Source of the DNA: Blastocystis sp. Blastoise
Taxonomy: Eukaryota > Protista > Bigyra: Opalinata
DNA: 64,000 nucleotides
Direction of reading: 5' to 3'
Assembly (NCBI GenBank): GCA_039096225.1
Contig: JBBPEB010000005.1
Span: forward strand, 1,240,001-1,304,000
Shown here: piece after piece, positions 593-62,870 of the stretch
Layout: each line of letters starts with the position of its first letter
Position numbering within the stretch: position 1 is the first letter of the stretch
Translations under genes and position numbers: made by a program
The notes under the pieces: model-generated
The model's input: the letters and a program-made list of their open reading frames with translations, nothing else
What the model was told of the DNA's origin: nothing
Databases searched by the model: none

Positions 593-3407
593 ATGGAATA
601 CACGTATGCACCAAGTACTCCAACAGGAAATGATTCTGTGTATTCCTACACACCTATAGCTGATGAAGATATTGTATGATTTAGGAAATTATTTTTCTAT
701 TCTATTTTATTTATAGGAACAAGAACAATTGTCTATACCAAGATGCGATTTTGATGTTGTTGAACAAACCTATAAGGATCAGACTGGAAAATACTTAATT
801 GTCTACTTACATTACGATCAAAAAATTACTTTTGTTGGTGGAGGTTATGTTTCTGTAAAGAAAGGAATGTGTTCATGTTTAGGCTATAAAATGAAGGCTT
901 CAGATGATTATTATCCTGTGATATCTCCTGCATGGGAATCAGCTATAGAAATACATTCTGAAAAATATAATAATAAGAAAACAGTAGCAAGCGATGATAA
1001 TAATTCTATTAAAAATATTTATGTTCCTAATGCTGATTTATGGGAAGGTAATCTATATATATCATTATTATTATTATATATAATATATATATATAGTTGT
1101 TGTTGTTTTCAAATCTTCTTCTACAGAATCAAATGAAGGCTTAAATGTATATATATGTTATTTTTTATAACTATATTATTATTATTATTATTATTAATTA
1201 TATATATAGGATTATAGTATTCCTGGTTTATCGTTAATACCCAACACGGATTCTGATTATGGGAATATATTCATACCCAAGAATGTAGGTAAAATATGCC
1301 ATAGAAATAGTATACAAGAAGATTTATGGACTAATGTATATTATATATATATATATATATTGTTATTAGAAAAAATTATTTATATATCATAAATATTACA
1401 ATTATATAATATATTTTTATGTTCTTTTTATTTTTGTATTTTATTACTGAATTATTAATATGTATACAATAGTGTTTTGAGACACTATTTAAATCTCCTT
1501 TTTCTGTGGTTCCCTCCTTTTTAACGTGCGGTCCACGTGGAAGCGGGAAATCAACATTATCACGTGTTCTCGTCAATAAATTATTAAATACCTATAAACA
1601 AGTGGCGTATTTAGACATAGATTTAGGTCAAGTATATATATATATATATTACTCTTTATAGTTATATTATATATATATTATTTGTTTTATATATATATGT
1701 TACTCTTTATAGTTATATTATATATATGTTATTTTAAACTTTATATATATATTACTCTTTCTAGTTATATTATACATATGTATTATATATTATATATATA
1801 GCCAGAATTTACTATAGAAGGATATATATCTTTTTCTCTTCTTTCTACTCCTCTTCTTCAACCGTCTCTTTCGTTTACCCATACTCCTTATAAAAGTATA
1901 TATATATATATAATTATTATTATTATTATTATTATTATTATTATTATTACTATTATACTTATACTTATTATTATTATTATTATATACACTAATATTATGT
2001 GAATACTATACTATTATAAACAACATAATATTGCTAATAACTATATATCTATATCTCCTTCTTATCCTCTATAGAAGTATATATATTGGGGATCATAACC
2101 CTGAAAATTGTCCTACTTTATATATGAAGGCAGTTTATACACTTTATCAAACCTATATACAATATTTCTCTGGTATATATATATATTATTATTATTATAA
2201 TTTAAAATAAATAACTATATATATATGAATATTCATATATTTCTAAGTATGCATTATATATTATAGATATTCCCGTGGTTATTAATACTTCAGGATGGGT
2301 CAAAGGAATGGGTTATGATATTCTTTTAGATATATACACACATTTTAATCCTATTTATACTCTATGTGTATATATATAAGAATAATTTTAAATATATATA
2401 TATATTATAGTAATAAATAATAATAGTTATTAATATATATATATAGATTCAGTCTCCTAATTCTTATGACGCGTATACGTTACCTGAACCGCCTAATGGA
2501 GCGATGCTATTAACAATTCCCGCGGTTAAAAACGGATTTATACAGACATCTGTTCAAAAACGTGATTATCGACTTTTCTCTTCTTTAGAATATAATAAAT
2601 TGAATAGTTTATTATCATCAGATCCAATATCTCTTTCTTCTTCTCTCTATAAATCTATATATATTATTCCTACATATTCAATTCAGTATACTTCTATTGC
2701 TCTCTACTGTGGACAAATATCCCCAGAATTATTTCATATTCCTATAAATGGATGTCTTGTCGGCCTATCTATATATACACAACCTTTTACTACTAATGTA
2801 TATATATATATATATATATATTATTTATATATATATATATATTATTTATATATATTATATTATTTATATATATTATATTATTTATATATATATTATATTC
2901 CCGTGATTATTTAGGATAAAACACCTTGTCTTCTCTCCTCAATACCTATTTGTGAATCAGTAGGATTTGGTATATATATATATATTAAAATATTTAAAGA
3001 TAATAGTATATATAAAAATATATATATATATATTAAAATATTAAAAGATATTACTATATATATATATATATAGGAATTGTTAGAGCTATTAATCTTCAAA
3101 ATAAATCATTATATATAATGACAACTGTATCTCCTGATCTACTTAAACAAGTAAATTTATTAATAAAAGGTTGTCGTACACTTCCATATGAATGTGTTTA
3201 TAAAGTATATATATATATATAATAATAATAATAATTCGATATATAATAATAATAATAATATTTCTATAAATATATATAATAATCATTCTATATAACTTTA
3301 TATAGGATTGCTTAAGATCTACACCATACTTCAGTTCCCGCGGGAATGGTGTTGGATCTGGACCAATTAAATCACGTAATAATTTAAAACGTTTTGAATA
3401 TAATTAA
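593..3407 (+). CDS. NOL9: Polynucleotide 5'-hydroxyl kinase, NOL9/Grc3 (Clp1 family), multi-exon
   Basis: Manual splicing gives Walker A GPRGSGKST (~1530-1556), AYLDIDLGQ|PEFT, PVVINTSGWVKGMGYDIL, CLVGL, C..GFG|IVR and a C-terminal SRNNLKR. GT-AG introns; TAA at 3405-3407. Confidence 0.88.
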
Positions 3408-60125: not shown

Positions 60126-62870
60126 ATGGCTACTTCCACACTAGATGATTCAATTAACGCGTGTGTTTTTATATTGATTTATTTTTCATATTAATATTAT
60201 AGAAAATTGTCTGGTAACCTATATAAGTTGTCAAAACATTTATTAAGAACAGTTTGGAAAAAGAAATGGTTTGTGTTAATGAAGTCTGATAAGATGATCC
60301 TTTATTATCCTAAAGAAAGTCAACTTGATTCACCAAGTATATCAATATTTTTTTTCTTGTTTATAATTATATGTATTTAAGAACTTTTTTAAATAATTGC
60401 TATTATTTTATTTTATTATAATTTTTTTTTTTAATAGAAGCTATTTATTTAAAAGATGCTTATTTGATTACTGAACCTAAATTAAGTAGTGCCAGGTCGT
60501 ATGCATTTCAAATTCAAATTGCTAATGATAAAGATAATATCGTTTCTTTAGCTGCAGAATCACAAGAAGAAGTATTTTTATAAAGTTTATTTTATATTTT
60601 TTATTATTATATATTTTATTGCTCATTAATATATTAACAAATTATTATATTATTATTTTTATTATTCTTATTAATAATAATAATAAATAATAATAATAAA
60701 TAATAATATAATAATAAAAATAATATAATAATAATAATAATATAATAATAAAATAATATAATAATAATAATAATATAATAATAATAATATATAGAAAGAG
60801 ATTTGGTGTATAGCTATTCGCCGTTTAATTGATAATTACCCTTTAGATACAAAATCAACAGTGACTATTTCCACGGGAATTTCAAAATCTTCTCTGTATT
60901 CTGTAACAAATCGAGTATATTCAGGAGGAAATATAATGAATCATAATAATATGAATGCTTCTGAATCTTATCCTTATAATTCATATGCACCATCAGAACG
61001 AAATTATAATAATCATAATGAAATAGGAACTACTATAAATGATATAAATTCAAATAAAACAATAAGACAATATAAATCAAATCCTTATTATAATAATTCT
61101 AATGATTATTCACCAAATGAAGTTATGTCTCCTAATAAGCATAAATATAATAATAATAATGAGAATAATAATAATAATGAAAACAATAATAATAATGAGA
61201 ATAATAATAATAATGAGAATAATAATCTATATAATAATGATAATAATAATCTATATAATAATAATAATAATTCTGTTAATTATGATATTCGTATGATTCA
61301 TAATAAATTAAATAATTATCGATCGCTTACACCTAAATATACGAATCCAAATCCTATTGTTAATCAAGGACCCAAAGTATATATATATATATATATATAT
61401 ATATATTATTTTATTTTGTTATTATATCTTTATGATTGTTTTCTATTTAGTTTTTTTTATGATAAATGTATATATATTTATATTATTTTCATAGAGTGAA
61501 ATTCTACGTCCTTATGATGTACGATCAAGAGGTATATTTTATTATTATTATTTTATTTTGTTTTTTATTATAATAATAATAATAATTTTTTTTTGTTTTT
61601 TATTATAATAATAATTATTATTTTATTTTGTTTTTTTATTATTATATAATAATTATTATTTTATTTTGTTTTTTTTATTATTATTGTAAATAAACATACA
61701 TATATAGAACAATCTATTTATTCTTCATCTCATACACCTTCTCAAGTAACTTATATATATATATATTTTATTTATTTATTTATCTAGTATGCGAATACAT
61801 ATTCGACACTCTCTGCGTCACCTTCATTAACTTATACAAATGGATCTAGAACACGTGCTTCTGCAACATCAACTGATTTAAGAAATCAACATTTATATAC
61901 TAATCAACAATCGAAAAATATACTTGGATCCCCACGGGGATCTACACGTAATGCTTCGATTCTCACGGGAAATGAAATAAATATTCGATCTTCTTATACT
62001 TATCCCCATAATATTACTTCTACAAGTATTATGGGTAATAATAATAATAATAATAATAATAATAATAATAATAATAATAATAATAATAATAATAATAATA
62101 ATAATAATAATAATAATAATAATAATAATAATAATAATAATAATAATAATAATAATAATAATAATAATAATAATAATAATAATAATAATAATAATAATGT
62201 TAATTGCTCTCCTTCTTCTCCTTATACTAGTATTCCTAATAAACGTCATGATTCTAGTCAAAGCCCTTCATTATCATCTCCTTCTTTACAACCTTATTCT
62301 AGAACAAACAATTCGAATATTATTCATATGAATAATCAACAAAATTATAATAATAATATTCAATATACACAACAAAATAATATAAATAATTATATATCTC
62401 ATTCTTCTCCTTCTCCTAATGTTATTACTCCTAATAATAATATTAATAATAATAATAATAATAATAGTTCTTCACCTTCTTATGTTTCTTATAATACCAT
62501 TCCTCCTACTCTCTCTTCTCCACATCTAAATAACAATAATAATCGATATATTGATAATAATAATAATAATAATAATAATAATAATAATAATAATAATAAT
62601 AATAATAATAATAATAATAATAATAATAATAATAATAATCATAATAATAATAATAATAATACTAATACTAATAATAATACTAATAATAATAATAATAATA
62701 ATACTAATAATAATAATAATAATAATAATACTATTCAACGTACAACCAGTTTAAAGGGATCTTCAATTCCCGCCATGAAATATAATAATTCCCGCTCTAC
62801 TGACCGAACTGTCTCTGCTAATGATTTATTACATGAAATACAACAAGATTTATCTTCTATGACTATTTAA
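60126..62870 (+). CDS. PH-domain protein with a long Asn/Ser-rich disordered C-terminus
   Basis: SGNLYKLS...VWKKKWFVL....ILYY...P..IYL...AFQI...LAAESQEEKEIWCIAI. Poly-Asn runs, e.g. 54 N at 62037-62198. Confidence 0.85.

Follow-up and report, generated by a model that had tools for sequence, protein, structure and literature searches.

A highly iterated GC-rich palindrome within the coding exons of an AT-rich tortoise Blastocystis genome

The palindrome and its sites in the window

The stretch analysed here (the window) covers 64,000 nucleotides of contig JBBPEB010000005.1 of Blastocystis sp. Blastoise, positions 1,240,001 to 1,304,000, and has a G+C content of 21.65% and a CpG observed/expected ratio (CpG o/e) of 0.68. 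Scattered over its genes is a short GC-rich palindrome built around CCRYGG, the subject of this work: thousands of copies of this one word lie in the AT-rich genome, mostly inside coding exons. The host assembly, that of a tortoise Blastocystis, amounts to 33.3 Mb in 34 contigs with ~21% GC. Isolate genomes from tortoise Blastocystis span 26.0-33.3 Mb and 21-23% GC, according to a paper whose searched text mentions neither the palindrome nor methylation (PMC12129017). Our statistics rest on an uninterrupted 264 kb, made up of the window and the 200 kb upstream of it, together with genome-wide word counts. Gene models are our own crude coding-segment predictions, made from open frames and codon log-odds for the 264 kb only; the predicted coding segments total ~103-106 kb with 29% GC, and the remaining sequence has 18% GC.

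An earlier sequence-only reading of this DNA had listed fifteen copies of the motif in exons, an intron and promoters, and at every coordinate the quoted string was found. The first group surrounds a Grc3/NOL9-like gene: TTCCCGTGGTTA (2270-2281) stands at the start of an exon, 3 nt past the 3' splice AG, and encodes IPVVI; TTCCCGCGGTTA (2517-2528) lies within an exon and encodes IPAVK; and the perfect palindrome TTCCCGCGGGAA (3335-3346) falls in the last exon, where it encodes SSRGN. The copy TTCCCGTGATTA at 2898-2909 is probably intronic, as stops close all three sense frames and the site ends up 5-17 nt before the AG of a TA-repeat intron. Its intronic position is read from frame and splice signals. 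Positions 4700-34800 are taken up by a CpG-poor gene-family block of He_PIG/HRM surface proteins and BTB-type genes, without a single motif or CCRYGG core.

Past the block, TTTCCACGGGAA (34994-35005) lies ~215 bp beyond the 5' end of a minus-strand BTB open reading frame, in what may be an untranslated region, a promoter or a short exon, and TTCCCACGGTTA (39479-39490) has only a short open frame around it. The weaker site TCCCCGTGATAA (39838-39849) and TTCCCACGATTA (43119-43130) are on the minus strand. Two sites belong to the region of an XRN (5'-3' exonuclease) gene, the weaker CTCCCGCGATTA (46811-46822) in an exon and CTTTCGCGGGAA (49436-49447) in a predicted exon, encoding PFAGN. A second copy of TTCCCGCGGTTA (50037-50048) is assigned to the minus strand by the coding-segment model (ITAGI) and to the plus strand by the best open frame in another test (IPAVI). 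Further on, a second TTCCCGTGATTA (53125-53136) encodes IITGI in a minus-strand exon and a second TTTCCACGGGAA (60868-60879) ISTGI in a plus-strand exon, while the palindromic variant TCCCCACGGGGA (61929-61940; GSPRG) and TTCTCACGGGAA (61960-61971; ILTGN) share one plus-strand exon.

Alignment of 72 strong sites from the 264 kb, a strong site being one good half-site plus the core, yields the two-fold symmetric consensus (A)T-W-M-C-C-R-Y-G-G-K-W-A(T), 12-14 bp long. Its commonest forms are ATTCCCGCGGGAAT, ATTCCCGYGGTTAT and ATAACCGCGGTTAT. The half-site T-W-M-C-C-R is mostly TTCCCG or TAACCG, with ~40% of half-sites of the TAACCG type, and the flanking T-W-M and K-W-A are specific. Beyond them the information content falls to ~0.01-0.02 bit at positions -7 and +8, and the absence of conservation past 14 bp rules out a dispersed repeat or the terminus of a miniature inverted-repeat transposable element.

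The two central positions are R-Y. Counted over the genome, GC centres occur 518 times, GT plus AC 731 times and AT 130 times, against 13, 13 and 7 in reversed controls (the same word read backwards, not complemented). The CpG-free CCATGG-centred form is thus itself ~19-fold enriched, so that the description of the motif as CpG-cored was only partly right, and the proposal that the core variants form a CpG-deamination series is not upheld.

The two arms combine freely. Genome-wide there are 113 TTC/TTC, 236 mixed and 58 TAA/TAA sites, where independent assortment predicts 131, 200 and 76, and the count at window scale agrees with this absence of covariation. Of the sites in predicted exons, read on the sense strand, 17 have the stronger half on the left and 13 on the right, and another 13 are strong on both sides. 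A two-fold symmetric word whose halves vary independently is the hallmark of dimer binding to double-stranded DNA.

Excess over composition and codon usage

We compared word counts with dinucleotide shuffles, with order-1 to order-3 Markov models and with synonymous-codon shuffles, the last of which keep every protein as well as overall codon usage. The window contains 11 copies of TTCCCGYG, although only 0.14 would be expected from dinucleotide shuffling (none of 100 shuffles reached 11); the 12-mer TYCCCRYGRKWA is likewise present 11 times, against 0.11 expected. When the GC-rich words of the 264 kb were ranked against an order-3 Markov model, with no motif assumed beforehand, the CCGCGG/CCRYGG family (CCCGCGGG, TTCCCGYG, CGCGGTTA) came out as the most over-represented. 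Genome-wide, the degenerate word TWMCCRYGGKWA is found 1379 times against 33 in the reversed control, TTCCCGCGGGAA 113 times against 0, TTCCCGCGGTTA in both orientations 236 times against 2, and TAACCGCGGTTA 58 times against 5.

Predicted exons hold 55 motif words, compared with 3.7 +/- 2.0 after synonymous-codon shuffling and a shuffle maximum of 10. The iteration across the genome claimed in the sequence-only reading, and the excess over a codon-preserving background by which it proposed to check the motif, are both confirmed by these counts; chance and codon usage are ruled out by all three kinds of null model. The observed/expected ratio (O/E) of the motif is alike in predicted coding (14-19) and non-coding (16-24) sequence under order-1 and order-2 models, the class scored as non-coding certainly including short exons that the prediction missed.

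Inside exons the word carries a visible coding cost. The codons it uses are rare within their families (CCC 6%, CCG 3%, GCG 2%, CGC 1%, GGG 3%, TCC 4%), and exon sites are distributed over the three frames as 22, 20 and 0, whereas codon shuffling would place 11% of them in the third (P ~0.008). A site in this empty frame would bring into frame either CGG, which at 0.41 per 1000 is the least used of all codons, or the stop TAA. CGG is almost absent from the predicted coding sequence of the 264 kb, and tRNA-Arg(CCG) may be scarce or missing. Seven of the eight SRG tripeptides are written TCC-CGY-GG (0.22 expected), six of the 12 P[AV]G tripeptides are motif-coded, and outside the family block 27 of 71 permissive tripeptides (38%) are. 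Once motif-coded cases are subtracted, the density of permissive peptides is 1.5 per 1000 amino acids, equal to that of the motif-free block (1.37), which indicates that the motif mostly creates its own peptides and does not recode existing ones.

The codon-shuffle test, the rare codons and the use of both orientations bear out the claim of a constraint at the level of DNA, not of protein. The accompanying statement that exonic copies occupy different frames and strands holds for orientation, but only two of the three frames are used. Four of the most site-rich long exons contain no Pfam domain. The site-rich exon at L007:1943-2950 (L007 denoting one of the sequence segments analysed) has no detectable homologue, and a UPF1-like exon has matches of <=43% identity only. 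A single-exon UPF1-like helicase (L014:3062-5683) is 37% identical to its best match from the same genome, which from these sequences seems to hold several divergent UPF1-family paralogues.

Most sites are present in mature mRNA; five of them, at L007:679, 719, 1200, 2298 and 2337, lie in spliced RNA contigs from the strain itself (run X1, identical to the genome). A 40-nt GT..AG intron at L007:1101-1140 was seen directly in such a contig. Transcription of the sites, their rare codons and the position of two window sites next to 3' splice sites would all suit an element acting in RNA, whether by folding into a hairpin, as a splicing signal within exons or by pausing translation at rare codons. 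The arms, however, do not covary, and there is a surplus of mixed sites, which could not form an intact stem, where an RNA stem would favour matched pairs; a stem-loop is ruled out on these grounds. Both orientations are equally represented on the sense strand, and the word recurs with similar O/E in an intron and in predicted non-coding sequence. We accordingly regard any function at the RNA level as highly improbable.

Gene classes, related words and candidate enzymes

The absence of sites between 4.7 and 34.8 kb, noted by eye in the sequence-only reading, stands. No gap in the 264 kb exceeds the 31.7 kb without sites over the family block (P = 0.006 under uniform placement), and in addition to the missing cores only three CCCG/CGGG words occur there. 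The block contains 15.3 kb of coding sequence, for which ~9.6 motif words would be expected at the density found elsewhere. Its coding sequence has a CpG o/e of 0.39 (0.71 elsewhere), a GC content at third codon positions (GC3) of 12% (17.5% elsewhere) and 0.52 GC-rich CpG 6-mers per kb (7.97 elsewhere), and nearly all other GC-rich words resembling transcription-factor sites are absent from it as well. Across the 264 kb, sites show modest clustering, with 19 gaps below 500 bp against 9 expected. Two pairs of sites 81-82 bp apart, at L010:7361-7442 and L011:4316-4398, have near-identical flanks around at least the downstream site of each, which suggests a local duplication ~7 kb apart.

Genes that carry sites include the Grc3/NOL9-like gene, the XRN-type exonuclease, a UPF1-like gene, the RNA polymerase II large subunit and several orphan proteins. 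Outside the block, no sites were found in MFS transporters, alpha-galactosidase, FtsJ, phosphomannose isomerase or the GDP-fucose transporter. With the exception of FtsJ, for which there is no figure, these genes too have a low CpG o/e; at 54265-58173 of the window, for instance, phosphomannose isomerase (CpG o/e 0.31) and the GDP-fucose transporter (0.47) are motif-free like the family block, although they lie on its 'core' side. The division into housekeeping and accessory compartments drawn from the sequence alone is therefore too coarse. Motif density per gene follows CpG o/e (rho 0.51, P = 0.001) and the density of other GC-rich words (rho 0.36, P = 0.03), so that the divide is better described as one between CpG-retaining and CpG-poor genes.

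Both correlations, like the low CpG o/e and GC3 of the block, would be expected if the motif were a relic, or only reflected the class or age of genes, and not a signal: CpG-retaining genes, perhaps weakly expressed or slowly mutating, would have kept ancestral GC-rich words in a lineage drifting towards AT, and CpG-poor genes would have lost them. In human Blastocystis ST3 (49% GC), a 21-kb locus has 12 bare CCRYGG cores, a density close to that of the exons here and in agreement with such a relic. Full sites, on the other hand, are missing from the same locus, and the count there (6 vs 2.9) is not clearly above expectation. Passive retention, moreover, cannot choose one 12-14 bp word with specific T-W-M and K-W-A flanks while equally GC-rich control palindromes stay unenriched, nor does it fit a motif that creates peptides instead of riding on existing ones. 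A relic is, in our judgement, improbable. A 3-kb metagenome contig held no full site either, and from this small sample the motif looks specific to the lineage studied here.

The palindrome is the most abundant of several GC-rich words resembling transcription-factor sites that are carried in exons; CpG-poor genes, the family block among them, lack nearly all of these words. E-box-like GCACGTGC, CRE-like TGACGCA and GATGACGC, and NRF1-like CGCATGCG are strongly over-represented in the 264 kb and form families apart from the palindrome; ~60% of the E-box-like and CRE-like words lie in predicted exons, as do 25% of the NRF1-like ones. Relative to the codon-shuffle null, exons contain 18 copies of GCACGTG (2.8 expected), 12 of TGACGCA (2.8), 14 of TCCCGCC (0.96) and 10 of the canonical E2F word TTGGCGGG (0.32). 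The control palindromes GGCGCC, GCGCGC, CGGCCG, CCCGGG, ACGCGT and TCGCGA show no exon enrichment by the same test, and GGATCC, CTGCAG and GACGTC are likewise at the null. Other words of this kind lie within 500 bp of 32% of palindromes (20% in the null) and within 200 bp of 11% (9%); the association exists at kilobase scale only, and tight modules are ruled out.

The resemblance to E2F sites pointed out in the sequence-only reading holds only for the TTCCCGC arm, which the palindrome shares with the enriched E2F-type words TTCCCGCCAA and TTGGCGGGAA. The E2F core is TTTSSCGC, that is, a T-run, two S and then CGC, and TAACCG halves or GT/AC centres would break the GCG contacts of such sites. 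Only TTC-type half-sites with a GC centre come near it, ATTCCCGC fitting seven of the eight positions; the TAACCG halves and the GT, AC and AT centres (861 of 1379 full sites) do not fit. The textbook E2F word TTTGGCGGGAA, in turn, is separately enriched, with ~28 copies in the 264 kb (for example at window positions 38976 and 62769), and since the E2F-like sites align to this word, the comparison suits it better than the palindrome. A spliced exon at L007:1017-1040 carries two copies of the E2F word and one E-box.

The genome does encode the corresponding proteins. Seven E2F_TDP domains score above the Pfam cut-off at about six loci, and two of the matches, C32:296068-296151 and C32:298151-298258 (on contig C32), stand 2 kb apart on the same strand; judged from sequence, C32:296068-298258 may encode an atypical two-domain E2F of the DEL/E2F7 kind. 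The palindrome could then be an E2F-family site, occupied by an E2F/DP winged-helix pair, possibly involving the product of this locus, on two overlapping inverted TTCCCGC cores, and the surplus of mixed half-sites would suit a heterodimer. Speaking against it, the canonical word forms a separate enriched family that already accounts for the encoded E2F/DP proteins, ~40% of half-sites are of the TAACCG type, over half of the centres are GT or AC, and the sites spread through gene bodies instead of lying near promoters. The E2F/DP family is consequently a weak candidate for the reader, and we consider this explanation decidedly unlikely.

Another explanation dispenses with a reader and takes its model from HIP1 (GCGATCGC), a palindrome repeated very many times in cyanobacterial genomes (Elhai 2015, PMC4390886). 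A methylase coupled to repair of the very-short-patch type, or some other biased conversion, would drive near-cognate DNA to the palindrome as a by-product, with no binding needed. Several features agree with such a drive: the iteration is genome-wide and largely frame-independent, O/E is alike in coding and non-coding sequence, transition variants of the centre are common, and the lack of sites in the young paralogous block fits an accumulation over time. Old conserved genes (MFS transporters, FtsJ, alpha-galactosidase) are nevertheless site-free, the CpG-free centre is enriched too, and unrelated words resembling transcription-factor sites share the exon enrichment and the compartment bias, which one motif-specific repair bias cannot explain.

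The enzymes for such a drive are also wanting. We searched the genome for domains exon by exon, a procedure that divergent genes can escape. The sole C5-methyltransferase gene found (PF00145), at C34:406469-408306 (L021:1501-3371) on contig C34, is of DNMT2/TRDMT1 type: it is split by introns, has PPCQP and ENV motifs, and finds its best PDB matches in the DNMT2/TRDMT1 tRNA methyltransferases 1G55, 9HGM and 4H0N. No DNMT1/3/5-type enzyme, no Vsr domain and no N4/N6 methylase domain (PF01555 without a match) were detected in this search. The suggestion that the motif is a methyltransferase target finds no support here; a 5-methylcytosine target is weakened by the same enzyme inventory and by the enriched CpG-free centre, and 5-methylcytosine is probably not involved. 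We hold the HIP1-like drive to be a possible but doubtful explanation.

A putative dimeric reader and known systems

From the observed excess, symmetry, exon embedding, coding cost and compartment bias, we infer that the palindrome is the selected site of an abundant dimeric protein that binds double-stranded DNA and populates the gene bodies of CpG-retaining genes. We assign this reading a probability of about 0.5. Mechanistically, each subunit of the putative dimer would read one half-site T-W-M-C-C-R, and selection at the level of DNA would keep the site throughout the bodies of the CpG-retaining gene class. Within coding sequence the word keeps to the two frames in which neither CGG nor TAA is read, and there it dictates the peptide, xSRGN or [ILV]P[AV][GV]x. 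Binding would organise the chromatin or the transcription of these genes; a part in marking chromatin, as suggested in the sequence-only reading, is conceivable.

Several results weigh against a dimeric reader. Divided into five bins from 5' to 3', predicted gene bodies contain 9, 12, 7, 13 and 8 sites; such an even spread, with no concentration at gene starts, is unusual for a transcription-factor site. Outside predicted genes, 12 sites fall on the 5' side and 11 on the 3' side, as far as the crude gene models tell. Among families that could read the site, COE, RFX, Rel and CSL domains (PF16422, PF02257, PF00554, PF09271) gave no match at E <= 0.1 in searches whose tool controls were prokaryotic, leaving absence unproven, and CG-1 and Zn2Cys6 DNA-binding domains were undetected in the genome. 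The sole reader class detected is E2F_TDP, with its imperfect fit to the motif. A related strain that differs by 2-6% retains two strong sites intact but has lost a weak one, a sample too small to establish constraint. This strain is represented by a poly(A) gut metatranscriptome (run X2), with exons at L007:1491-1721, 2210-2427 and 4140-4400.

A more far-reaching version gives the iterated palindrome the role of a sequence-encoded mark that separates resident genes from CpG-poor, expanding or foreign DNA such as gene families and transposons. The dimeric reader would then set the chromatin state, or shield the resident genes from silencing, without cytosine methylation. We offer this as a speculative and rather unlikely extension of the dimeric-reader proposal.

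The signal is strong enough to fix amino acids, is symmetric with respect to strand, and follows a compositional division of the genes into classes. The palindrome offers a way into the question of how regulatory or architectural information is kept in an extremely AT-rich genome whose non-coding DNA is mostly TA repeats. For annotation, clusters of rare codons such as CCC-GCG-GG and TCC-CGY-GG are to be taken in this genome as a DNA signal, not as sequencing noise or a mark of foreign origin. A literature search for the palindrome word itself returned primers only, and iterated palindromes that take precedence over codon choice have been described in cyanobacteria (HIP1) but, as far as our searches show, not in a eukaryotic nucleus.

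Of the known DNA-binding systems, E2F/DP sites have the TTCCCGC arm in common with the palindrome, and E2F/DP genes are present in this genome; the palindrome differs in its TAACCG halves, its GT/AC/AT centres and its occupation of gene bodies. The EBF/COE site is TTCCC-NN-GGGAA and the RFX X-box xTxxCC-RY-GGxxAx, so that, going by these consensus sequences, both share with the palindrome the 14-bp two-fold symmetric geometry and the 2-bp centre. A COE or RFX DNA-binding domain was, however, undetected in the Blastocystis genome, and we know of no reports of either family from stramenopiles.

By its behaviour the closest analogue is HIP1. Both are short GC-rich palindromes, over-represented tens-fold, located in coding sequence in more than one frame and uneven over the genome. 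The Blastocystis word differs in belonging to a eukaryotic nucleus; at 12-14 bp it exceeds HIP1 in length, it is degenerate, with half-sites of two kinds, and it keeps to two frames and leaves a visible trace in the protein. Orphan methyltransferases that recognise the core of HIP1 have been linked to that palindrome, whereas no cognate DNA methyltransferase was found in the Blastocystis genome. Exonic transcription-factor sites ('duons') offer a further parallel, since there too protein-binding words within coding sequence bias the choice of codons and amino acids, binding in Blastocystis being the proposed counterpart. The difference from duons lies in scale, as here one word recurs at about one site per 3-4 kb, writes 38% of the permissive tripeptides and accounts for 7/8 of the SRG tripeptides.

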